A program made the translations under genes and the position numbers. A stretch of DNA of 63,347 nucleotides, counting the filler, from Hyphochytrium catenoides (Eukaryota; Protista; Hyphochytriomycota): NCBI GenBank assembly GCA_900088475.1. It is 10 parts of 10 records of this genome, joined end to end, with 100 filler letters (N's around TTAATTAATTAA, not from the genome) between each part and the next. Parts side by side here need not be neighbours in the genome. Positions count along the whole stretch, not along the records: positions 48,071 to 61,029 come from FLMG01003978.1; 9 more parts are not named here. One strand, 5' to 3'. This document shows, piece after piece, positions 47,671 to 61,129 of the stretch. Within the stretch, counting starts at the first letter, position 1. Each line of letters begins with the position of its first letter. The notes beneath the pieces are model-generated. The model ran no database searches and was not told the DNA's origin. It saw only the letters and a program-made list of their open reading frames with translations.

Positions 47671-48396
47671 TCTCTGTCTCTCTCTCTCTCTCTTCCTCTC
47701 TCTCTCTCTCTCTCTCTCTCCCTGCTGCCCCTCCCTAAGTCATGGGAGGACTAAGCTCCGTCAGGTCTGAAAGGGAGAGAGAAGACAGGAGAAAGAGAAG
47801 ATAAAGAAGAGAGGAGTTCCTCTCTCGCCCTTCTTGCTTTCGTCAGCACCTTGCATCTTCCTTCTTTTGCTGTCTTCCTCTGTCCTTTCCTGTCTTTCTG
47901 ACAGCCATTCTTTTCTAGGGGCTCTCTTTCTCCATACCTCTCTCTCTCCTTCTCTCTCTCTCTCTCTCTCNNNNNNNNNNNNNNNNNNNNNNNNNNNNNN
48001 NNNNNNNNNNNNNNTTAATTAATTAANNNNNNNNNNNNNNNNNNNNNNNNNNNNNNNNNNNNNNNNNNNNTCCATTCCCCATCTGTTACTTAAGTTCTAT
48101 TTCTCCATCTATCGATGTTGATTGTCGCTAGAGAATGGTGGTCTGTCTAGTTCTATCATCGCCTTCGCCTGCTTACACCTGGAGATGACGCAACATTCTT
48201 CCTCTTTACTTTGTCTTCCCGTGTCCAATAACATCTCATTCACTCGAGATTGCGTCCTCTTGAATCTCACGAGACCATCTCATTTTATGTCTCTTTCTCT
48301 CTCTCTCTCTCCCTTTCTCGCTCTTTAATCCTTTCTCTCTCCCTTCGCTTCTTTTCGCGCAATTGTCGTTGATGTTGCTTTGACGACGTATGACAG

Positions 48397-50185
48397 CCGT
48401 GTTCTTGTCTGCAACCACACCAGCCCATTCGACATACTTTACTTCTATTACTTCTATCTTCCTTCTTTCCTGGCAAATCACACCGTGAAGGGTCTGCCAG
48501 TCATCGGCCGAGCTGCCTGTCTCCTGGACTGCCTCTTTGTCGATAGGAGGAGCGCTGAGAGCAAAAGAGAGGTCGCCGAGAAGATCAAACAGAGAGCATC
48601 CGACTCCAGGTGAGATAGAGGAGAGAGTATGAGACCTTTTGGAGGTCTGGAAGGTCTTTTCTTCGCTCACAGAAGCGTGCGGGGAGGAAGGAAAGCTGGT
48701 AGATGGGCAGGGAGCGGCACGCTAGTGGTGGATGTAGATTGAGAAAGCTGGATGACGCCAAAGGAATTAACAAGAGAGAGTGGGAGCAGGAGCAGAAAAG
48801 GAAGACCAGCTAATGCAAACATCGGGCAGGCTTGCTCTTGGCCTTAGATTATAGATTGACCGGAACTGTCTTGCGATCCTCTTACAATCGTATCTCTTCT
48901 CTAGGGCGCCACCGCTGCTCATCTTCCCTGAGGGGACAACCACGAATGGGTCAGTGCTTATTTCTTTCAAGAAAGGAGCATTCGAACCTGGTGAGTGAGG
49001 GCCAACCTTGGAGTCTAACGGGACCTCGCTCTCTCTTTTGGTCCACAGGATGTCGAGGCTCTCTCCCTCTTAAGTTTTTATCTCTCTCAAGCGGTCTCAT
49101 TTTCAAGCTTCTTCTCTACGTATCCTGGTCCCTTTCTTGAGAATCTTGTCGGGCTCTCATCCTCGCTATTTTGCTTACCTTAGCGGTCTCTTCTCTTCGT
49201 CCGTCCTCTAGGAGTGCCAGTGACCCCAGTCATTCTACGCTACCCTTTCAAGCACTTCAACATGGCGCACACATCCTCTCATGACACGCAGCAGCCATTG
49301 AACATGCTGCGGGCGATGACTCAGTTCAGCAATTCCATCGAATGTACTATCCTACCTGACTACGTTCCCTCTCTAACTCCTGGTGAGAGAGGGATTGCTG
49401 CGGAAAGCACAGATGCGCCTCTGTTCGCGAACAATGTGAGAGCTGTGATGGCTCAGGCAATGGACGTTCCTACGACGGAGCATTCTTATGAAGACCTATT
49501 CTTGGCTCGGACAGCCACTGAGAAGAGAATCTTGCAAGTGTTCACATACAAAGCATTGCGTAGCTCCTTCCCGTCTCTTCAAAGCCTTGAGATGATAAAG
49601 AGAGCAATGATCGCCTTCTCTTTCCTAGATCGGGACATGGACGGACTGCTTCAGCCTCAGTGTTTGTGGCCGCAAGGCAAAGAGCAGTACTGGCACTCTC
49701 TCATCTACGCCTTGGTAGGAAGCCTCGTTATTCCCGGGAAGAGCGAAGATGCTGTAGGAGGGCTCGACTTCTTGGCCTTTCTGCATCTGCTCTGGCTTAC
49801 CCATCATGATGTCCCAGAAGCAAAGAAGATGGCTTACCTTAACGCTTGGATCTATGACCATTCAACAAAAGAGAGAGGGGCGCCGCTTATGCTTGACCTT
49901 TGCTCTGACTTTATCATCCCCGTTGCTGACGGTTCAACAGCAGCAGAGGAGCCAAACCGCGAGGTCAACAGCCCCCAGACACACTTTGTTGAGGACAATA
50001 CGATGCGAGGCGTGGAGAAGGGACTCCGGTTTGATAAGAATAGCTGCAACGAAGCTTTGCAGAGCTTGGGAGAGGGCCTTCAGGATGCCTGGGAGACTCA
50101 TATGACGAACGAAAGGAAGCAATGGGAGAAAGAGAAGCTCCCTTCCTCAGTGCACGCGATCTTATCCATAGACATAGACCCATAA
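48397..50185 (+). CDS. LPCAT: Lysophospholipid acyltransferase, LPCAT1/2-like (PlsC family), with EF-hand-like C-terminus; exons 48397-48609, 48905-48990, 49212-50185; 5' truncated
   Basis: Acyltransferase blocks VCNHTSPFD, LFVDR, LLIFPEGTTTNG, FKKGAFEPGVPVTPVILRYP. EF-hand-like AFSFLDRDMDGLL. GT-AG introns keep the frame. Confidence 0.9.
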
Positions 50186-51809
50186 TAGAGTCATTATATA
50201 CTAATAGAGAAGCAAGTGCAAATGTCTCCTGGACGGGCGCCAAGCGTAAACGATGCTCGTTCTCGTCGGACAAAGGACGTTTGGCCTCTGTAGATGAAAT
50301 TTGAGGTCCACCTTCAAGATCCCTTGCTAGTTGCGGATGTGGTCTCTCGTTAGTCACTGAGCTCGAGCGGGATCTCACAACCAAGTAGATGTCCATCCAT
50401 GAAGGTTAACAAGAGAAGGTTGCTATAGGTGAGGGGGAAAACTGATGAGAGAGAGAGAGACGCTAATGAGAGAGAGAGAGAGAGAGAGGAGAATGAGCGA
50501 GAGAGAAAGAGACAGTCTGGTGAGCGACCCATCCACTTGGGCGGTTAAGCTCGCCAGAGAAGAGCAATGTCAAAAGAGTGACAATTTATGATCTTACTTC
50601 TTACTTGGGTCGCCGTAGCTATTGACCTGAGCTTCTTCTCTTTCCCCTTCGTCATGACAGGAAGCTCCTTCATCTTACATCTCACTAACACAATGGAACC
50701 TACACACGCCTGGCCGCACTGCCGCCGCAATGATGGTGACATGATAAAAAGGAAAGACGTCTTTTACTCCGTCTCCACACGTCTAAGGCTCAAGGGCAGA
50801 AGGAGCCGTTATATCTCATGCAGCTTCATTCATCTTTCCGCTGTTGAAACGTCGTTCATTAGAAGAAGAAAGATCAGACTGCAGGCAGCCATTGTCCAGC
50901 TGCTCAGCTGCTGGGAGTCATTGAAAGAAAGACAAGGAACTAACGGACGGCCCTTGGCTTTCATCAATCATCATCATCACCAGCAGACCACCAGCCAGCA
51001 GCAACATTCCTAGGAGCTCTTTCTACTCGCTCCATTCCTCGTCTTTGCTTCTTGCAGAACAGAATAGAAGAGGCGGTACTACTGCTCGGCTCTGCGTCCC
51101 AACGCGACTCTTTGACGACGGAGAACTACCGTTTCGTGGTCGATCGTTGTGTTTGTTATCCTAAGAATCTGTGTGGCTCTTTCCTTGCGAGGTTGTTCTA
51201 CTCTTCAACAAGGAAGAATATACACTCCGTTCTGCCATTATAAAGCGCTATGCTGACCTCGGAGACAGGGCAGAGAAGGAGTAGGACGAAGAAATGGAGA
51301 GGAATTACCGAGAGGGGAAGGCTTGCTTGCTGGGTGATCTCAGTAAATATCCCTAGCAGGATTAGGATAAGAAGCGGCTGATAGCGGCCTGGCTCTTTGG
51401 CAGGTGGCCAGGACGGAAGAAGAAGAAGCCTAGAAGCTTCCTTACCGTTCCGAAAGCGTTCTTCTACTCTCAGAGGACACCGTTCACAGGAAATCTGAGC
51501 TGCTGTCCACTTAGTCTTGGCAGACTAATCGACTGGCTTTCTCTTTCTACTACTCTCCCTTGTCCACGAATGGCTCATGGATGGTGATGCAAACGAAGTC
51601 TTGGTTGTTGAGTAGGGAATGGCTCTGTGTGTACGCACTAGAGGAGAGCAGAGTTCCTTCTTCAGCTCATTCGTTGTCTCTCCTCGTTCGTCTCCTCTCA
51701 GTTGGTTAGTGTCGCCCAGCACGCCTCCGTCTCTTTTCTCCTTCTTTGCGTCTTAGACGTCGCAACGAGCAGTGGCCATTATTGTTCTGTTCTCTCTCTC
51801 TCTCTCTTT

Positions 51810-52037
51810 CTCAACGAGTGCCAAACTATGATGCTCCAGCAGTCTGCGGATGATGATGGAAGAGTTCGGTTTAAAAGACCTGGCGTCTTCCCGGAGGAAA
51901 GGAGTGCTGTTCTTGTCCTCTTTATCTCTCTCTCTCTTCCTCAACGAGTGCCGACTACGATGCTAAAGTCTTGTCGATGAGGAAGAGTTCGGTTTGAACT
52001 TCCCATCGTCGTCCCCGGAGGAAAAGTAGTGCTGTCC
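51810..52037 (+). repeat. ~130-nt diverged tandem duplication
   Basis: CTCAACGAGTGCC...GGAAGAGTTCGGTTT...CCCGGAGGAAA..AGTGCTGT occurs at 51810 and 51940. Confidence 0.8.
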
Positions 52038-52476
52038 AGGCAATCTTTTCGCTCCCAACCAAGTACTTTCTACCGTCTTCCTACTATGATGTCAAAGGCT
52101 CCTAGAGTATGGCGTTTGCTCTCTCTCTCCCTGCTGCTTCTGCCTCTTCTCCTCTCTATCGGCTCTACGTTTCCTCCTCTATCTTTTCTCCTCTTGGAGA
52201 AGAAGTCTGTCTTCCTTCCTCCCTCTAGGTCCTTAGGCAGTGGGATGCTTGTCCTGTTCGCGATCATGATGATAGATTCAGTCTTCGCGGCCTTGCCACG
52301 TCTCGCCCATGCTCATCTCATTCTAACTTTCTCCACCAACCAGCAAGGAGGGAGAGCCATCAAGACCCGTTCCTCCCACTCTTTCTCCATCGCTTCTGTC
52401 GCGAGCCCCGGCAACCAAGAACGAGGTCCCAATCGTACCATCGACCAGCAAATTGTCCGTGACAGCGTCAACAACC

Positions 52477-54441
52477 ATGGGCCTCATAGGAACCGGACCG
52501 ATACTCGCCGTGCAGATCTCTCTTCTTCTTCTCTCCGGTCGCTCTTGCGCCCTTTCCGCTGTCCTCGGTAAAGATACCTCCTTCACAATCCCTGTCAGTC
52601 GTCTCTTTGGTGACGGATATACGGGAAAGCTCATTCCCATTGGTCCCAATGGGGCGAACCGAGGGCCCGATGGCGCTGTGGGCCTGCGATGGACTAGTGC
52701 TCCACCTTCTGGGCTGAAAGGAGCGGACGGTCTGACGGAGGTATGGCTGAACTTTGACAAATTAACTCCTTGGGGAAGGAGCTTCACTGATCGCACTACC
52801 GTCAACATAACTGGGATCATTGAGGGACATGCCTTTGCCAGTAAAGCCAAGGAACAGCTTGCTGCTGGTGTCCAATTGCCAATGAACCTCGCGAATCAGA
52901 TAGATGTTAGCGCCTTGCAGACAAGAGCTGCCTGCCGCAGCTACAAAGGGGTGGACCCGGAGAAAGACCTAGTGGAGGTCTTTATCCCAAAGGACACCGT
53001 CAGGAGTTTCGAGTTCTTGGACGGCCAGCGAACGCCTACGCTTCTCATCGACACGGATCCCATTGAGATCAGAGGACGCCAGGTTGCCCTGGCTCAATTC
53101 GTTGGCCCTGCGCCCGATAGCGTGCCTGGTACGAAGGCTTACAAGGTAAATGTCTATGACATGAAGGCAAGACGCTTCTCAGAAATGGAGCGGGTTATCC
53201 ACCTTCAAAAGTCCGCTACGTATGATCAGGATGTGATCAAGAGAGCGAGCTTCGAGCAGATGGAGAGGAACACCGCCCTCAATGAGATTGGCTGGTACCT
53301 CTTTGGCGAGCATATTGACGGCAACTTCATCGTCCAGTCCATGGAGCCACGAGACCTCACAAAGGTCAAGAACCCTCCGCCTGTGGTTGTGGGTAAGGAT
53401 GAAGACAGAGAGACGAAGTATGCGTTCCTCCACGAGAAGAACTTTCAGAATGAAAAGGAGCGGAAGGGACAGGTTAGCGCGGCTCAGATACAGAGCACGG
53501 ATGACGAGAGCAACGTCTGGAGAGAAGGAGACAGAGGGCTCTTAGTTCATATCTACGGAGCAATGGGGACCACTGAGGAGTATAAGAAGTACGCAGATCC
53601 TCTTGTCCAGCTTCCTTTCGCAGGAGAGCAGTTCCAGTTCAGCACTGGACACTTCTCCTACGGCTATGTAGACGTGAGGCGGTGTCCCTTCACTCAGGAG
53701 CTGCGCTTCGACATCACGTACAATCAGGTCTACACGCACAACCGTGAAGGCGTGGTCGCTGGAAGGCAGAAGTTCTGCGTCTACTCCGGAAGCTTTGAAC
53801 GTGGCCTAATGTATACCTACTCCATCTCCGATGCCATTGTAAAGAACAGCGCGCTAGCGGGCAAAGTTGTCCGCATGGAGGAAGTCACTAACAAGCCCCT
53901 GACTTTCCTGGATCTTGTGAACCGCGAGATAGATGTCATGGCCGCACGGTATCGCAGTGGAGACGGTCTGGGCACTTCCTGGGTCGGTGCTACGAACAAT
54001 TGTGCTCAGGATTCCAATCTCGCGATGTGGGCCGCTTACCAGATCAACAAAAAGTGGATTGAAGGCAAGATCCCAGATCTGGAGAAGCTTGGCGAGCATA
54101 TGAGTGATCAGGTCGTGCCCGACGCTATGAAGAGAGACGACTGGGTCGCAGTGCTGAATAAGAAGTTGATAACGCGAAGTCAAGATGGAGACATTGTCCC
54201 GAACACTGTCAACTCAAAGACTCTGTCAACCTGGAGAGTAATGGCTCCTCGTTGGGCCTACGATGGCATCCTTCGCGGGCTGATAACCTTTGACTTCTCG
54301 ATAACTTTCCTTCGAGCCAGCCAGGTTGGAGGATGGCAGGAGATAACTATCCCCATCGCTCCAGGGTGGCAGTCTGATGCCTGGAATAAGTCTGACATCG
54401 AAACGATGAGAGAGATAAAGGACTTCTTCCGTCTCCCTTGA
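52477..54441 (+). CDS. Intronless secreted protein (654 aa) resembling the soluble domain of cyanobacterial 'Abi/CAAX protease'-annotated proteins
   Basis: ACAACCATGG start and signal-peptide-like MGLIGTGPILAVQISLLLLSGRSCA. Motifs GWYLFG..DGNFIVQS..PR, WREGDRGLLVHIYG, TGHFSYG..CPFTQELRFDITYNQVYTHN, VMAARYRSGDG.G..V..TNNCAQDSN.A, STWRVMAPR and LRASQVGG..IPIAP are recalled from that cyanobacterial family. Confidence 0.8.
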   Translation: MGLIGTGPILAVQISLLLLSGRSCALSAVLGKDTSFTIPVSRLFGDGYTGKLIPIGPNGANRGPDGAVGLRWTSAPPSGLKGADGLTEVWLNFDKLTPWGRSFTDRTTVNITGIIEGHAFASKAKEQLAAGVQLPMNLANQIDVSALQTRAACRSYKGVDPEKDLVEVFIPKDTVRSFEFLDGQRTPTLLIDTDPIEIRGRQVALAQFVGPAPDSVPGTKAYKVNVYDMKARRFSEMERVIHLQKSATYDQDVIKRASFEQMERNTALNEIGWYLFGEHIDGNFIVQSMEPRDLTKVKNPPPVVVGKDEDRETKYAFLHEKNFQNEKERKGQVSAAQIQSTDDESNVWREGDRGLLVHIYGAMGTTEEYKKYADPLVQLPFAGEQFQFSTGHFSYGYVDVRRCPFTQELRFDITYNQVYTHNREGVVAGRQKFCVYSGSFERGLMYTYSISDAIVKNSALAGKVVRMEEVTNKPLTFLDLVNREIDVMAARYRSGDGLGTSWVGATNNCAQDSNLAMWAAYQINKKWIEGKIPDLEKLGEHMSDQVVPDAMKRDDWVAVLNKKLITRSQDGDIVPNTVNSKTLSTWRVMAPRWAYDGILRGLITFDFSITFLRASQVGGWQEITIPIAPGWQSDAWNKSDIETMREIKDFFRLP

Positions 54442-57305
54442 GCAGACTGAGAACCGACGATGCGCGCGGAGAAGCGCCAAGAGCCTTAGTCCTCCTGCCC
54501 GTACACTTTCTTGCTGAATAGCACGTGGCATGCAAGCACCAGCAGTGTCAACAAGCAGATCAGTGAAGAAGAAGGGCTATCATCATCGTGGTGGCCGCGC
54601 TTCGGATCTAGATCTGCCGCTCTCGATGTTGAATAGTAGTGAACAGTAGAAACAAGCAGTCTCTATATTCGTCTAACAATCTTCTCAATAATGGATAATC
54701 AGTCCACTTGGACTGCTAACTAACCCAAGGAGTGCAAGAGCTTTCTTCTTCCAGCCAGAAGGCGGCTACTCGAAGAAGAAGCGAGAGAATATTGTCAAGG
54801 GCCAAGTGTGGCTCGGCTGGCCTCTTCTTCCTCCCGCCATACTTTTCCTACCAAGCCTCGCCTTCTTTCGGCGCCTGCTAAATCTTTATCTATCTGCTAT
54901 GTTACGTGCAGCAGGGCTACACCTGCTGGGATGCTACTCCTACCCGTTATCTGCTGGTTATTGAGTCTCTTCCGACGTGGTCGTCCACCAGAAGAAGAAG
55001 CCCACCGTCCGAGACAAGCAGCAGATCGTGACTAAATGAATCCTTAATTACTTTGTGCTGCTCTGTCTCCTCCGCCGCCACTGATGAGCAGCTTTAGCTC
55101 TGTCAGCAAGAGAAGCTTTATATCTTATCATCATTAACTTTATTTATGTCCCATTCCTTGTTGATGCTGGCTGCACCACCTGCTGCAGTCGATAGCTCCA
55201 AATGAAGAAAGTTGGCATCTATTGGGCTTTCTCTAGTCTGTTGCCATTGCTGGTGCGCAACAACTGGCAGCAGCAGGATCTGCTGCGCGGCAAACGATCA
55301 TACTAAGCAATTAAGCTGCTCTGTAGTGGGAGCTTGCCTCCCTAGTTCCTGTGCAGCTGGCTCAACTTACCACGGCCCACCACCACTGCGCCATAGCCCA
55401 CCTGTCCGTCCGATGATCCGTCTGATGTCTCCGCGTGGACTTTACTCGATAATAATAGGTAGAACCGTTCTCAGAGGACGTGGCGTTACTTCTCACTCTC
55501 TTGAAGGCTTGACAGCGGACAGCCGCTGCCTTCCGTTATGATCCTCTGCTCTTTATTAGACGCAACGTAAGGAAGCAAGAAGGGGCGAATGAGCAGGGAG
55601 ATTATAGGAAGAAGAAGAAGCCCTGCTGGATGACTGTTTAAACGCCACCATCCATCGTTCCTCCTCAAGAAGAGGGCATCTTCTTCGTCCAAGAAAGTCT
55701 CTAACAGCCGACAAGCTAATCGTTACTAGGCGGTGATATCCAGCAGCGACAGTTTCTCCGTGGGTCTCTTAGTGGTCTGCCCTTTTGCCGCTTTCTCCCG
55801 CTGATGATGATGGGGCACCTTCATTGGCACCATCCTTGCCCTTGTACACGTCAGCCGACCTCTATCTCACACTCGAGCAGCCTCTCATTCATACTCCGTC
55901 AAGGCTTGTACCACAGCTCCACATTGAGAGCAGCAAAATCGGCACGCTTCCGCACGGCAAGGAACAAGCAGAGATCCACATTTCTCATTCTCCTCCTCCT
56001 TCTTCCAACCACTGCCTACCACGACGAACAAAGACCGCACAGGGGAACAGAAATCAAGGCGATGTCGTCGCTTCGTTGGAGACAGAGTCTCACTGTGGCT
56101 CACAGAGGCACGTGGAAGGATCCACGTTTTCACATTTGCTTTTTATGGATAGCAGCGGTTATCTACGCTGATCGTTCCCTGCTGCGCTGCTAAGCGGTAC
56201 GGAGGAGAAGCCTGAACGGCACCACGTACAGAGCTCGGTTAAGGAAAGCGGGACCTTTTTCTCTTACTGTCCTCGCGCACTGCGTCTATTGCCAAGCCCC
56301 ATTGGGTCATCTCTGGCACGGTTCTCTCTGTCTTGTCCATTGTTCCCTTGTATGGCTGAACAGCGGTTTCCTCGTCCTCAGCCGGGCTGTTAAGGGATGG
56401 ATGTGGACAGGAGGAGAGAGAAGGTGGGAGAGAAAGGAGAAAGGGTGGAATGCAAGCTTGTAGCTTCTAGAAAGGCTACTGATAGGCGCTGCAACCACAT
56501 GCTGAAGAGTTACAGGGCCATGACAGGAGGGCCGCTCAGCGCTGCTTCTACTACGTAAGCGCATCTAGGCGAGGTATGACTCTGTCAGAGGCCAGCGATA
56601 GAGACAAAGAAGAGCCTGTTCGGACCAAGAACATGGAGGGGCGAGAAGGAAAGTGATGGGCAAGGAAGTGGCAGGTAAAATCCACTGCTGTGGGGGGCAG
56701 CAGAGATGAGATTTCCAGCTCACAGCCCATCGATGCTGAGCAGAAGAGGGAGGGAAAACAATGGAGAGCAGCATGTCGAGGACGCTTTTAGCCTTGTGGG
56801 GCCTTTCTGCCCTGTTTCCCTCCGTCCTCCTTGACCCAATCTCTGCCTCTTCCTCGGTGGCATCTTCGCTCCACATCGTACCTTCCTCATCCCTTCAAAC
56901 CTGCTGGCAGCTTGTTCTTCTTGTCGTTGACGTTGAAGTTGGGACTGAGCAGCCACAAGGAGGGAGAGAGAGAGAGACAAGAAGGGACGGTGGCCGCCAT
57001 TCTGGATGTTCTCTTTCTCCTTTCTTTTTCTTCTTTCTTCTCTGCTTCTTTCCGCCCGTGCCGCCATGGCACAGCTGCCCTGTCGACTTTCCGCTAGGTC
57101 CATCGCTCGTCAGGGAGAGCCCGATGTTGCTCTCAAAGTGCAACCTTATGGCCAGAGGAAAGTGGACGCCATCATAGACTACACTGGAGATGAGAAGGGA
57201 GAGACACGTGCAAGGTGGAACCAAGAAATAGTTCTAGGCCGTATCTTTCTCCTCTCTTTTTCCTTCCTCTCTCTCCCTCTCTTTCTCTCTCTTTTTCTCT
57301 CTCTG

Positions 57306-57344
<39 letters not shown>

Positions 57345-57359
57345 ATGTTCAAGGTGAGA

Positions 57360-59000
57360 AGTGTACCGGCGATAACCTTTATATAATTTTATTGGTTCTA
57401 TGTGAAAAAACGAGGGAAACGATCCTGTTGCCTATTTATTTGCCCGAGGAAGAGGGAGGTGAGGAGGGTGGTATAGGCGGTGTTCTACGTAAGTTTTATT
57501 GGGGATTTTATGTAGTTTATGGGGGTGCCAAACAATTTGTGTCTTATTATTTTGCAAATGCTTTTTATTTCTCAATACTGTAATAAATACGGTCTTCTCT
57601 GTCACCCTTCCTGCTTCAAGGGTTAAACCGAAGAAAAAAAAATAGAAGAGCCAAATACACATTTGGACAATCCCCAAAATAGCGACCACACAAATATCAA
57701 ACACTTTTATCTGAATGCAGAAATTACCTCATAAAAGCATAAAAGGATGAGAGATTATTGGACAGGGTGTCCTACAGGTAGCAGCCGTCTTTCTTAAATT
57801 TTGTAGACCCACAAGAGAAAACAAAAACAGGATGAGGTTTTAACCATGAAGAGAGTTAGTTCTACAACCAGACACATTTGAAAGCTGCCGAACGGTAGTC
57901 TATAGACATTTTTTTTGTGAAAAGAGGTGTAAGGATTTTTCCTTTCTGACCTCCTTTGTATTTTATTAATTGATTTTTCATAAAACTAGAGCGAAGTGGT
58001 GGTCAACGCTTGTGCTTTCCAAAAAAGCTTTATGCAGACGTCCCACAAAAAAATTAAAGAAGGAGACCTCAAAAGTTCACGGGGGCCAGGAAAGTTATTC
58101 CTAGAGAGGGTTAGCTCAGCTGTTAGCTCTATTATTTAGAGAAAAAGCAGGAAAATTTTTGCCAAAGAAAGGAAGGAGACTGATATAGAGGAACAGAAAG
58201 TAGAATGGTAGAATGAACAAAGTGCTGCAAAGAGAGAGGAGGTAAGGCCCTAGGAGTATCCAGCCACAGACCCCAGGTTCTCAAACAATGCTGAGGGCTT
58301 TGTCACTACGAAGGAATAAAGGGCCCAGTACCGTCTGAGGCAGCGCCTCAGAGCGAGACAGGGCTGCCCGTCATGATGTCACACGTACGTAGGGCAAGGT
58401 GACAGTGATGGACGGCTCTGCCCAAAGACTTCCCCGCGGTCCCTTACTGAAGGATATTTCCAAGCGTTGGGAAGATGGCAAAGGGAAAGAGCAGAAAGAC
58501 AGAGGGCTGGACTAAGTTTAGCAGGCATTATGGCCAACAGTGTTACTATGTCAGGCAGCGCCAAGAGATGGGTAACACTACCCAGGACAGTGCTGGCCTG
58601 TTAACAAACGTAGCCCACTCATTCACGTGAGTACGTACCTATACGGAGTGATATATGACACAGGTCAATGAGGGAGGCAGATAGACGACTGTCGCAGGAT
58701 GTAAACAGAGAACGGGAAGACAGGATGAGCTCGAGAGAAAGAGGGCCTTGTAGAGTGCTTTTTGAATAGAGAGGTGTGTGACGTACACGTGGTTGACAGA
58801 ACGAGGTTGCATGGACAGGTAGAGAAGCCTCTCACCTCTTTCACCTGACCAGATCAGCCGTCTTCTCACTGCAGCGTTTGTGTACGAGGATGGAACAAAA
58901 ATATCAGGAGGCAGAAGAGGATAAGACATGTCCGGGAAGGTAGAGCTAAATGAACGTTTTGGCCCCAATAGATGTTATCTGTTTGGCCGCAAGGGCCCAT
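57360..59000 (-). mobile_element. Decayed gypsy-like pol relics (RT/RNase H ~57400-58100; integrase-like ~58250-59000)
   Basis: AT-rich block with remnants RLPFG, VVAILGIVQ (cf. VRSFLG), KAF..PNKTYV, FHG..KQITS..FSSTF and GPF. It has many indels. Confidence 0.35.
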
Positions 59001-60927
59001 GAAATGAATGAGACGAGACAACGAGCTGGGTCACTGTGAGAAAAGAGAGAATGGGGAACAGATGATTCTTTTCTTTTTATAAAAGATGCAGAAGAGAACG
59101 ACTCTTCTTAGGTCTTTCGACGGTCCGAGCTCACCGAAGACCAAAAGGGGCTGACGAAAGGCAACCAGGAGACCTCTCTCTCTCTTCCATTTGTGTCCAA
59201 TGGCCCTAGTAGATGTGCAAAAACGCGGGGAGGTTGACTCTACTAACTGACTGGCCAATATGACAGGAGAAAGAGAAAAACAAAAATAAATAGGGGGAGA
59301 GAGAAAGGGAGCGTAAAGCGTCTTCTCTCTTTCTCTGCTCTTGCTCTTTTTCCCTTGCCTAGTGACCAGCCTCTTTGGCTCAGCTTTGTCAGCCAATGTC
59401 TCTCTTTCCAAAGTAGCCAATAATAACTATGTAAAAAATTGATCGCAGATGACGAGGGAGCTCTTGTGTCGAGTGAGGAACGACAGAAAGTTGGAGAGAC
59501 CAAGGAACTTCGAGTTAGAGGGAAAGATTGTGGGTTGAGAACCGAGAGAAGCCAGAGGCTCTAGCATGGCCTGAGAACTCTTCTTACATTTTCCCCAGCT
59601 GGTACATTGGTAGAATGTACATTGGTAGAATGACGTCCACGCTTCAGGTTCCACCTAACAGAACGACCTAGGAGAAGAGGGAAGGCCGTCGCAAGAGTTA
59701 AGGGCCAAGAGAGAAGAAAGCACCTTTGAAACGCCTCTCTCTCTCTCTTTCTCTGTCTCCCACTAGCGTTATTCAAGCGGCCCTTGCACCTATAGTTGGC
59801 TAGCCCAGCCCAGTAAACAGTAACGGCAAGAGAAAAGAGGAACACATCTTCTCTCTTTTCTCTCTCTCTCTCTCTCTTTCCCTCCTCCACTCTTTAGAGT
59901 GAACTGTTTATGGCATAGGCATAGTTCCAGGAATGTAACGTATGAGACAGAAGAATCCAGTGAAGAGGGAGAGAGGGTTGCTTATCCACTCTGTCTTCTT
60001 CGCGAAGACAGCCCACTTTTTCTAGTACACGTGATCGTAGGAGCATGGGAAGAGAGGATTGTGAGCCTGGAACAACGTCAGCTTTAGGAAAAAGGAAGGC
60101 CTTCTGTCCTCTCCCTCCTCCGGTCATCTCTCACCCACTCTGTCTCGTGCAGCGCCTATTATCATCTAGCTAATTGATTCATTAGTGATGGCAGCAATAT
60201 ATCTCGCTTCACTCTTTCTCTATCCTCCATCGTCAAGAGATACAGAGAAAAAGAAAAGAGGACAAACAGGGAGAGAGGGAGAGACAGAGAGAGAGAGAAG
60301 CGACTGGTCGTCGTTACTCTCTCCTTCATAGTCAGTTCACTGTCACTCTTTTTCTCTCTCTCTTCATCTCTCTCCCTCACACTGGTTTCCCCTTGTTGAT
60401 GACGCTAACAACGGCCTTCCCCACAGAATGTCTTGGCAGGTAAACGTGTCATCTCCTCCGTTAGTTAACACTGGGGTTACAAGGGCAAAACAGCCAAATG
60501 GTCCTCTGTTTTTCTCCTTTCTCTTTTGAATTCCTTGCCCAACGTGCCCTGCCCAGAGAGGAAGAAAGAGAGAGAGAGAGACGGCTGCCCCTTCTCGAGC
60601 CTCTCTGCTCTCCATCTTCGGCCTCTACCTGTCTCTCTCCCTTCTCTTACATGTCTTTTGCCTTGCCCTTTTCTCCCTTCTCCCTTCTGTCTCTTCTCTC
60701 TCTTCGTCTCGGTTTCTTCTTCTGCTTTCTTCTCAAGACTGTCGCTGGCGTGGCAGACATCTTCATAAATGTGGGAATGGACGATGGGCGGCCAAAACCA
60801 TGGCTCTATTCCTCTTTCATTAACTCTTCTAGAAGGTAGAGGCAAGAGAGAGAGAGAGAGAAACACAGAGAAAGAGAAAGAAAGAAAGAGAAAAGTCGAA
60901 AGGTGGAGAAGTGGAGGTGAAAAGAGC

Positions 60928-60999
<72 letters not shown>

Positions 61000-61129
61000 T
61001 TGGCCCTTCCGTTAGAGATGACAAACCCTNNNNNNNNNNNNNNNNNNNNNNNNNNNNNNNNNNNNNNNNNNNNTTAATTAATTAANNNNNNNNNNNNNNN
61101 NNNNNNNNNNNNNNNNNNNNNNNNNNNNN

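Follow-up and report, generated by a model that had tools for sequence, protein, structure and literature searches.

A hydrophobic S1 pocket characterises the permuted NlpC/P60 enzymes, whose targets are fatty-acyl amide or ester bonds, and the LRAT/HRASLS proteins are known both as acyltransferases and as phospholipases. Chou et al. 2015 reportedly found that dae/Tae amidase genes, which are said to encode canonical, non-permuted NlpC/P60 peptidoglycan amidases of proven type VI secretion system (T6SS) effector ancestry, were domesticated by ticks and other eukaryotes. YiiX was crystallised with a fatty acid (PMC3142127), TseH and Tox-Act1 have phospholipase activity (PMC12994826), and Lnb is the lipoprotein N-acyltransferase of Bacteroides (PMC11573676). 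In Staphylococcus aureus, the extracytoplasmic permuted NlpC/P60 enzyme LnsA bears a signal peptide and caps the CPBP-family membrane protein LnsB; through a Cys-His dyad it supplies lipoproteins with the sn-1 acyl chain of phosphatidylglycerol (PMC7387801, PMC13559823). Here, we describe a gene of the microbial eukaryote Hyphochytrium catenoides (assembly GCA_900088475.1) located at 52477-54441 (+) of the 63,347-nt stretch of joined genome parts that was analysed (the window). We propose that it is a real, intact nuclear gene of bacterial descent in a heterozygous organism, and that its product is probably a secreted cysteine-histidine enzyme acting on lipid-linked molecules. Taken as a whole, with the family placement and the mechanism set out below, we consider this best explanation moderately likely.

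The piece of the window under study (48071-61029, 13 kb) contains a single long open reading frame (ORF) in the ORF listing, at 52453-54441 (+). From its first ATG at 52477 it forms an intron-free coding sequence of 654 codons that ends in a TGA stop at 54439-54441, as supported by the ORF list, a codon check, and end-to-end homologues, and its start context (caacaaccATGg) has A at -3 and G at +4. Tandem Repeats Finder placed no tandem repeat or microsatellite within 51812-54630, and scattered (CT)n/(GA)n arrays on both sides of the ORF. The first-pass annotation of this DNA had claimed an intronless 654-aa ORF, free of microsatellites and with a favourable start, and on each of these points it was right. 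An exact look-up of the protein, with two alternative starts, returned no record in a public gene collection.

The protein belongs to a large family. An exhaustive search of 1.84 billion protein representatives (cut-off E<=1e-3) found 245 relatives, the best of which (P0001 and P0007) are 38% identical to it at E ~1e-73 with residues 47-632 aligned. The best value, 5.7e-74, excludes chance, and 88 representatives between 5.7e-74 and 1e-30 align over the same residues, with homology spanning essentially the whole length (residues ~38-632). Among 185,579 prokaryotic species genomes, scanned with the alignment of its subfamily (A2) as query, 535 relatives were found, overwhelmingly in Cyanobacteriota (Microcoleus, Moorena, Oscillatoria, and others); the three top loci come from one Silvanigrella metagenome-assembled genome (MAG) and two "uncultured proteobacterium" MAGs. 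A broad distribution of best hits across eukaryotes, the outcome that would have spoken against a transferred gene, was not seen. The family is overwhelmingly prokaryotic and has neither a name nor a Pfam or NCBIfam model; searches of the window protein against Pfam, NCBIfam, PADLOC, and PDB sequences gave no match, and a Pfam search of it and 32 family members gave none even at E<=5. A structural search of the atlas retrieves the family's own members (template modelling, TM, scores of 0.78-0.82). In the family alignment (A1) the conserved motifs are WREGDRGLLVH, TGHFSYG, ELRFDITYNQVYTHN, ARYRSGDG, NNCAQDSN, PR, and QVGG...PIAP, confirming that the ordered motifs which the first-pass annotation had listed are real and conserved. 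The window protein retains 59 of the 67 strongly conserved columns.

We draw attention to the name under which the homologues are filed. They are indeed annotated as "predicted Abi (CAAX) family protease" or "abortive infection protein", as had been stated, but that name is borrowed from a fused domain, PF02517 (Rce1-like/CPBP), which lies C-terminal to the shared region (~690-825) in 6 of the 6 scanned members of 810-848 aa and is absent from members of ~600-690 aa and from the window protein. Hence the window protein is not a CPBP protease, and the earlier statement that it has no multi-transmembrane CPBP domain is borne out twice over, by a Pfam search without a CPBP match at E<=1 and by a hydrophobicity profile whose only hydrophobic segment is N-terminal. 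Further fusions within the family join an alpha/beta hydrolase (P0046) and Lnb_N (DUF4105; P0078) to the shared region, with fusion coordinates of residues 190-375 and 506-933 in P0046 and of residues 19-484 and 703-857 in P0078. Microcoleus genomes hold both a 692-aa stand-alone form and a CPBP-fused form of ~830 aa. PADLOC matched no anti-phage defence model to the window protein or to three bacterial relatives, and the four bacterial loci inspected (L001, L002, L004, and L081) have no conserved neighbour partner and no conflict-system context. Directly 3' of the Microcoleus family member, at 5106-6425 of L004, is an IS605 OrfB/Cas12f-like (TnpB) gene. The window protein shares all signature motifs (TGHF, QVY.HN, ARYR.GDG, C.QDS, and QVGG among them) with the Abi-annotated cyanobacterial proteins (such as those of Microcoleus, Moorena, and Leptolyngbyaceae; ~600-690 aa when stand-alone and ~810-860 aa when CPBP-fused). 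In contrast to them it lacks CPBP, carries a eukaryotic-type signal, lies in eukaryotic DNA, and belongs to a lipoprotein-type subfamily that is not cyanobacterial.

This last point is based on one tree of 142 rows and three careful trees. The branch of the subfamily is starred in each, with values of 99 in the 142-row tree, 100/100 in two trees, and 100/99 with environmental eukaryotic rows added. Its bacterial members (P0001, P0002, P0007, P0012, P0014, P0166-P0182, and L001-L003) are stand-alone proteins of ~600 aa with lipobox-like N-termini, from Silvanigrella-like (Silvanigrellaceae-like) and other uncultured bacteria, and the cyanobacterial sequences form a separate starred clade, split off by starred branches. 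Scored against the subfamily profile (A2), members reach at least 632 bits and cyanobacterial proteins at most 559. A subfamily-specific insertion (GVDPEKDLVEVFIP) before the "D.VEV" strand (A1 columns ~250-270) is present in the window protein, whose identity is 33-38% to the subfamily and 28-33% to cyanobacterial proteins. The few eukaryotic carriers of the subfamily and its nesting in a large bacterial radiation make a bacterium-to-eukaryote transfer the economical reading, and this is the direction that we infer. Thus, the bacterial descent in the earlier proposal of a cyanobacterial gene, horizontally or endosymbiotically transferred, stands, and its cyanobacterial or endosymbiotic source does not; lying outside the cyanobacterial branch in all trees, this is not an endosymbiotic gene. 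The phylogeny that had been suggested as a check likewise gave the expected patchy distribution in eukaryotes without the expected nesting within cyanobacteria.

All of the named eukaryotic members fall in the same subfamily. Paraphysoderma sedebokerense (Blastocladiomycota) has two paralogues (P0025 and P0052) and Quaeritorhiza haematococci (Chytridiomycota) one copy (P0026); the two are unrelated fungal parasites of the alga Haematococcus. All three genes are spliced, and their neighbours are eukaryotic (Velvet, GDI, ribosomal L13e, and LSM). The product of P0052 (L082 8001-12088, GCA_025602915.1; spliced, 1109 aa) joins the family domain to C-terminal TPR repeats, a eukaryote-specific fusion. 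Two environmental contigs, L085 and L086 (sources ENA ERZ28593212 and Logan SRR24908252), probably come from eukaryotes as well and widen the eukaryotic range: L085 (2111-6167) has two tandem paralogues, one with a short GTATGT...CAG intron, L086 (671-2816) has three coding pieces in three frames with GT...AG introns of ~80-90 nt, and the neighbours on both are weakly eukaryote-like. In addition, a soil metagenome has yielded a fragment of 121 aa (P0008) that aligns gap-free with the window protein at 80% identity, showing that the gene also occurs in a related organism. When metagenomes were scanned with peptide patterns of the window protein, no relative came up.

How many times, then, did eukaryotes acquire this gene? 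One option is that the window, fungal, and environmental copies have one shared eukaryotic origin, in a single ancestor or by spread from eukaryote to eukaryote, and so would be mutual orthologues or xenologues, in place of separate captures from bacteria. The base of the subfamily is a polytomy of the query, P0007, P0012, the fungal clade, the environmental eukaryotic clade, and two bacterial clades, and all seven eukaryotic rows leave this same base. They stand together in 38% of bootstrap trees, and forcing them into a clade costs 0.92 log-likelihood units (approximately unbiased, AU, test p 0.45; AU p 0.295 for four rows). The eukaryotic copies also all carry signal peptides. The free trees, however, have no such clade, one of them pairing the query weakly with the bacterial P0007 (81/73), and the window protein is 27-34% identical to the fungal proteins, no higher than to those of bacteria; the long branch makes either result unreliable. 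On these alignments one eukaryotic acquisition would fit as well as several, and we regard a shared origin as a genuine contender whose chances fall a little short of even.

Turning to structure, AlphaFold2 with a 32-sequence alignment produced a confident model of the full-length protein, with a predicted local distance difference test (pLDDT) score of 82.8 and a predicted TM (pTM) score of 0.87; residues 305-640, modelled separately, reach 84.8 and 0.87. The beta-rich N-terminal half (residues 38-300; 52588-53376, +) looks like two OB-like barrels, and residues 305-635 (53389-54381, +) form a predicted permuted papain-like domain (NlpC/P60, YiiX/TseH-like) with a large helical insertion. Three residues stand out within it. 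His392 of the TGHF motif (codon 53650-53652, +), invariant in A1 and A3 and at the start of a beta-strand, is the candidate general base. Cys509 of NNCAQDSN (54001-54003, +), the candidate nucleophile, opens helix 509-523 and has a conservation of at least 90%. Gln417 (53725-53727, +), also invariant, is the candidate third (orienting) residue, on a strand that the hairpin 392-402/409-417 indicates to be antiparallel to that of His392. Tyr415, Tyr419, and Tyr492 are conserved tyrosine candidates. In the model, a His on a strand, a polar residue on the paired strand, and a Cys at the start of a later helix follow one another in the order of permuted NlpC/P60 (PPNE) enzymes, for which the reference triads are His49/Glu64/Cys154 in BcPPNE, His64/Glu81/Cys172 in TseH, and His49/Asn66/Cys148 in Lnb (PMC3142127, PMC11573676).

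When the C-terminal domain was searched exhaustively with VIA-align, the top three hits all came from one superfamily, that of permuted NlpC/P60, matching 150-163 residues of chains of 180-189 residues and set apart from the rows below them. Among named families, TseH and Lnb_N came out nearest in an independent language-model search. Foldseek against the PDB, with full and domain models, returned weak OB-fold rows or noise and nothing for the C-terminal domain; a PDB profile search was negative, as was an hhalign comparison of the domain profile with the Lnb_N of P0078 (probability 0.4%). The modelling suggests that the C-terminal half is a divergent permuted NlpC/P60 Cys-His enzyme. The "uncharacterised domain" of the first-pass annotation has become too sweeping a description, as this half models as a permuted NlpC/P60-like fold.

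Beside the negative searches must be set the alternative that the C-terminal domain is not of the permuted NlpC/P60 type, and is instead a new or different fold or a non-catalytic binding module in which His, Cys, and Gln serve a structural or metal-binding purpose. The agreement of the three top structural hits on a single superfamily, clear of the following rows, argues against this, as do the TseH and Lnb_N results of the independent language-model search and the fit of both the permuted His-strand/Cys-helix arrangement and the membrane- and lipid-related fusion partners to that superfamily. We judge this alternative unlikely, though it deserves to be kept in view.

The predicted permuted NlpC/P60-like domain would operate outside the cytoplasm. 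Residues 1-31 (MGLIGTGPILAVQISLLLLSGRSCALSAVLG; 52477-52569, +) are predicted to be a signal peptide of the endoplasmic reticulum (ER) type on the grounds of hydrophobicity, a low-pLDDT helix, and a position before the conserved domain. They are the protein's only strongly hydrophobic stretch (Kyte-Doolittle 19-residue mean 1.9) and are modelled as a low-confidence helix ahead of the folded part; the conserved domain begins near residue 38. Possible signal peptidase sites follow Ala25 (S-C-A) or Gly31. The corresponding segment is a lipobox or transmembrane signal in bacterial relatives and a signal peptide in the fungal ones. The hydrophobic N-terminal signal noted earlier is thus present, is signal-peptide-like, and replaces the bacterial lipoprotein or transmembrane signal. 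The signal ends in LLLLSGRSC (GRSC being residues 21-24, 52537-52548). Two added residues apart, this resembles the lipobox of bacterial relatives (LTSGC, LLSAC, or VSATGC), and it may be left over from an ancestral lipoprotein signal.

Given a signal peptide and a putative cysteine-histidine domain, what might the role of this protein be? Judging from the fold, the conserved residues, the domain fusions, and the analogy with known enzymes, we propose the following. The signal peptide would direct the protein to the ER and the secretory route, where it would presumably be cleaved, to leave a mature protein of two OB-like beta-barrels followed by a C-terminal permuted papain-like (NlpC/P60, YiiX/TseH/LnsA-like) domain. 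Cys509 would be activated by His392, oriented by Gln417, and, as in permuted NlpC/P60 enzymes, could form an acyl-thioester leading to hydrolysis or transfer of the fatty-acyl groups of phospholipids, lipopeptides, or lipoproteins. The family would then consist of extracytoplasmic thiol acyl-hydrolases or acyltransferases at the membrane surface, with the window protein as a stand-alone, ER-exported form. Candidate substrates are the lipids of its own secretory pathway, prey or associated bacteria, and a host membrane.

One parallel is LnsA-LnsB. The best HHpred hits of S. aureus LnsA are 2IF6 and 3KW0, the same structures as were found here, and the cyanobacterial members of our family fuse a permuted-NlpC/P60-like domain and CPBP in one chain, a Rosetta-stone parallel to the two-protein system. 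The parallel is one of architecture alone, with no detectable sequence homology. A CPBP partner occurs only in the cyanobacterial fusion members, with none for the window protein in cis or elsewhere in the 13-kb piece, and a eukaryotic cell offers the enzyme no bacterial-type lipoproteins of its own as substrates. Compared with permuted NlpC/P60 enzymes, the domain of the window protein is about twice the size, having extra strands and, behind the Cys helix, a helical insertion of ~100 residues; its third residue is probably Gln and not Glu, and it is preceded by two OB-like domains. In contrast to TseH (a Vibrio cholerae T6SS effector, 6V98), Tox-Act1, and Lnb/DUF4105, the window protein has no match to PF25218 or PF13387, and the bacterial family loci examined show no toxin-immunity or T6SS context. 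With dae/Tae it would have in common a descent from papain-like bacterial envelope enzymes, a patchy acquisition, the fitting of a signal peptide, and constraint; in contrast to them, the ancestor of the window gene looks like a housekeeping lipoprotein, and its function is a predicted one.

Taking these analogies to their limit, the family could be an uncharted branch of permuted NlpC/P60 whose cyanobacterial members are single-chain equivalents of LnsA-LnsB. Its stand-alone lipoprotein form would have been captured by several microbial eukaryotes, this organism and the two Haematococcus parasites included, and refitted there with a signal peptide. It would now serve as a secreted effector, a lipid-directed counterpart of dae, removing or transferring acyl chains on membranes foreign to it, whether of bacteria or of a host alga. 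We offer this as a speculation, and rather a long shot.

How firmly does the proposal of an intact nuclear gene of bacterial descent, encoding a secreted lipid-directed enzyme, hold? To assess its genomic setting, Logan contigs of three DNA runs of one study (X1, X2, and X3) were placed on 49600-55400. Several points weigh against the proposal. No single independent contig bridges the neighbouring gene and the ORF, the linkage being one of tiled contigs of equal depth from a study that may itself have made the assembly. The only runs that contain the locus are these three DNA runs, with no RNA run among them. The n-region of the predicted signal peptide is without a basic residue. The branch of the query is very long (~2.1 substitutions per site), and within the subfamily the query falls in a basal polytomy. 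The candidate triad is derived from sequence conservation and the secondary structure of the model, and the query and 32 relatives have no sequence or profile match to the permuted NlpC/P60 models (PF05708, PF04970, PF13387, and PF25218).

Two of these points, the lack of an RNA run and the very long branch, would also be expected if the gene were a recently acquired or decaying passenger, unexpressed, functionless, and open by luck, as would the substitutions at 8 strongly conserved positions, the SPLE(S/T)LAG motif among them. Seven of these fall in the N-terminal half, leaving one (residue 449) at a C-domain position of lower conservation, and the strongly conserved columns of the C-terminal domain are all retained. 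This retention, a frame open for 654 codons, a host-like codon composition, and a eukaryote-style signal peptide all speak against a passenger, and the gap-free, 80% identical soil copy (P0008) indicates purifying selection. We therefore rate a passenger as highly improbable.

The neighbourhood of the gene bears on the question of contamination. An LPCAT-like acyltransferase gene (48380-50185, +; exons 48380-48609, 48905-48990, and 49212-50185), cut at its 5' end by the edge of the piece, lies 2.3 kb upstream of the ORF on the same strand. Its two introns (48610-48904, 295 nt; 48991-49211, 221 nt) are both GT-AG, and the three exons splice in frame into 429 aa with one terminal stop. Exons 1 and 2 match PF01553 at consecutive profile positions (17-89 and 87-117), and the final exon is similar to EF-hand LPCAT/LPEAT proteins; the first-pass annotation was thus correct in placing a spliced eukaryotic LPCAT gene on the same contig. 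NHTSPFD, FVDR, and FPEGTT motifs are present in this protein, and its tail is a degenerate EF-hand. Its nearest database matches are weak, at 36% identity (a protein of a marine-eukaryote catalogue) and 41% (fish LPCAT2), indicating that public protein sets contain little from the host lineage.

From the end of the acyltransferase gene through the spacer and across the ORF, contig depth is flat at ~22-24 in X1 and ~320-360 in X2; even coverage over 50185-52477 had been named beforehand as a check. Contigs enter the ORF from its CT-rich 5' flank in X2 (52157-52741) and X1 (52357-53534), and an X3 contig (54119-54544) crosses the stop codon. At 0.62, the GC content at third codon positions (GC3) of the ORF lies within the range of the LPCAT exons (0.59-0.65) and above that of the closest named bacterial loci (0.39-0.41), and the relative synonymous codon usage of the ORF correlates with that of the neighbour gene (r 0.50). 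In the 13-kb piece there are no other bacterial-looking ORFs, Pfam domains, or RNA genes (Rfam). Thus, even depth in two runs and matching GC3 make contamination or a chimera unlikely.

The case for bacterial DNA having been misjoined to a eukaryotic contig would be that the ORF is intronless with bacterial relatives, that no Logan contig spans the LPCAT gene and the ORF, and that the runs come from one study. Against it, the ORF shares the depth of its spliced neighbour in two runs of very different depth, the contigs cross both the 5' flank/ORF junction and the stop codon, the CT/GA microsatellite style is alike on both sides, GC3 is host-like, further bacterial ORFs and RNA genes are lacking in 13 kb, the N-terminal signal has no proper lipobox, and a best bacterial identity of 38% means that no close bacterial source is known. 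Such a chimera is, in our view, close to negligible.

The runs differ from the window (49600-55400) by many single bases and small indels, at 95-99% identity; examples are a 21-nt insertion in a GA array at 50444 (X2) and indels of 3-4 nt at 52085 and 52210 (X1). With contig breaks that coincide with repeats, and so many allelic differences, the organism looks heterozygous; the differences point to heterozygous alleles or strain differences and probably explain the fragmented assembly. Upstream of the ORF, 440-690 nt from the ATG, is a diverged tandem duplication (51782-52035) with units of ~125-130 nt, in each of which CTCAACGAGTGCC follows an opening (CT)n run. The promoter region could have been duplicated here, and Logan contigs end within the duplication. 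The 6.5 kb downstream (54500-61029) has no ORF above 140 aa and no Pfam match, and is either gene-poor or home to short-exon genes that were not recognised; it is rich in CT/GA microsatellites and has a low-GC patch (0.37) at 57571-58070.

Plastid targeting, which the first-pass annotation had suggested, found no support: the N-terminus has a plain signal peptide alone and no bipartite presequence, with no Phe after either cleavage site and no transit-peptide-like extension before ~residue 38. A cyanobacterial gene that arrived by endosymbiotic or horizontal transfer and is now plastid-targeted is therefore scarcely credible: although most known members and the nearest atlas clusters are cyanobacterial, and an N-terminal signal is the first half of the bipartite plastid presequence of complex algae, all four trees put the protein outside the cyanobacterial clade in a subfamily without a cyanobacterial member, its identity is lower to cyanobacterial proteins than to that subfamily, the Phe and transit-peptide-like spacer are lacking, and the other eukaryotic carriers are non-photosynthetic fungi.

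The transfer itself is solid and a fairly ordinary case of bacterium-to-protist transfer, single-gene transfers into microbial eukaryotes being common, and with a donor side other than cyanobacterial it carries no information on plastid ancestry. Of wider reach is the family: extracytoplasmic proteins of 600-850 aa, found in hundreds of bacterial species and especially in filamentous cyanobacteria, that have no Pfam model and are misnamed "Abi/CAAX protease". For its bacterial members, the CPBP fusion, which mirrors the recently reconstituted LnsA-LnsB, yields the testable hypothesis that they may transfer acyl groups of lipoproteins or phospholipids on the outer side of the membrane. In turn, this also provides a hypothesis for why a secreted copy may have been retained in a few eukaryotes, notably in parasites of algae.

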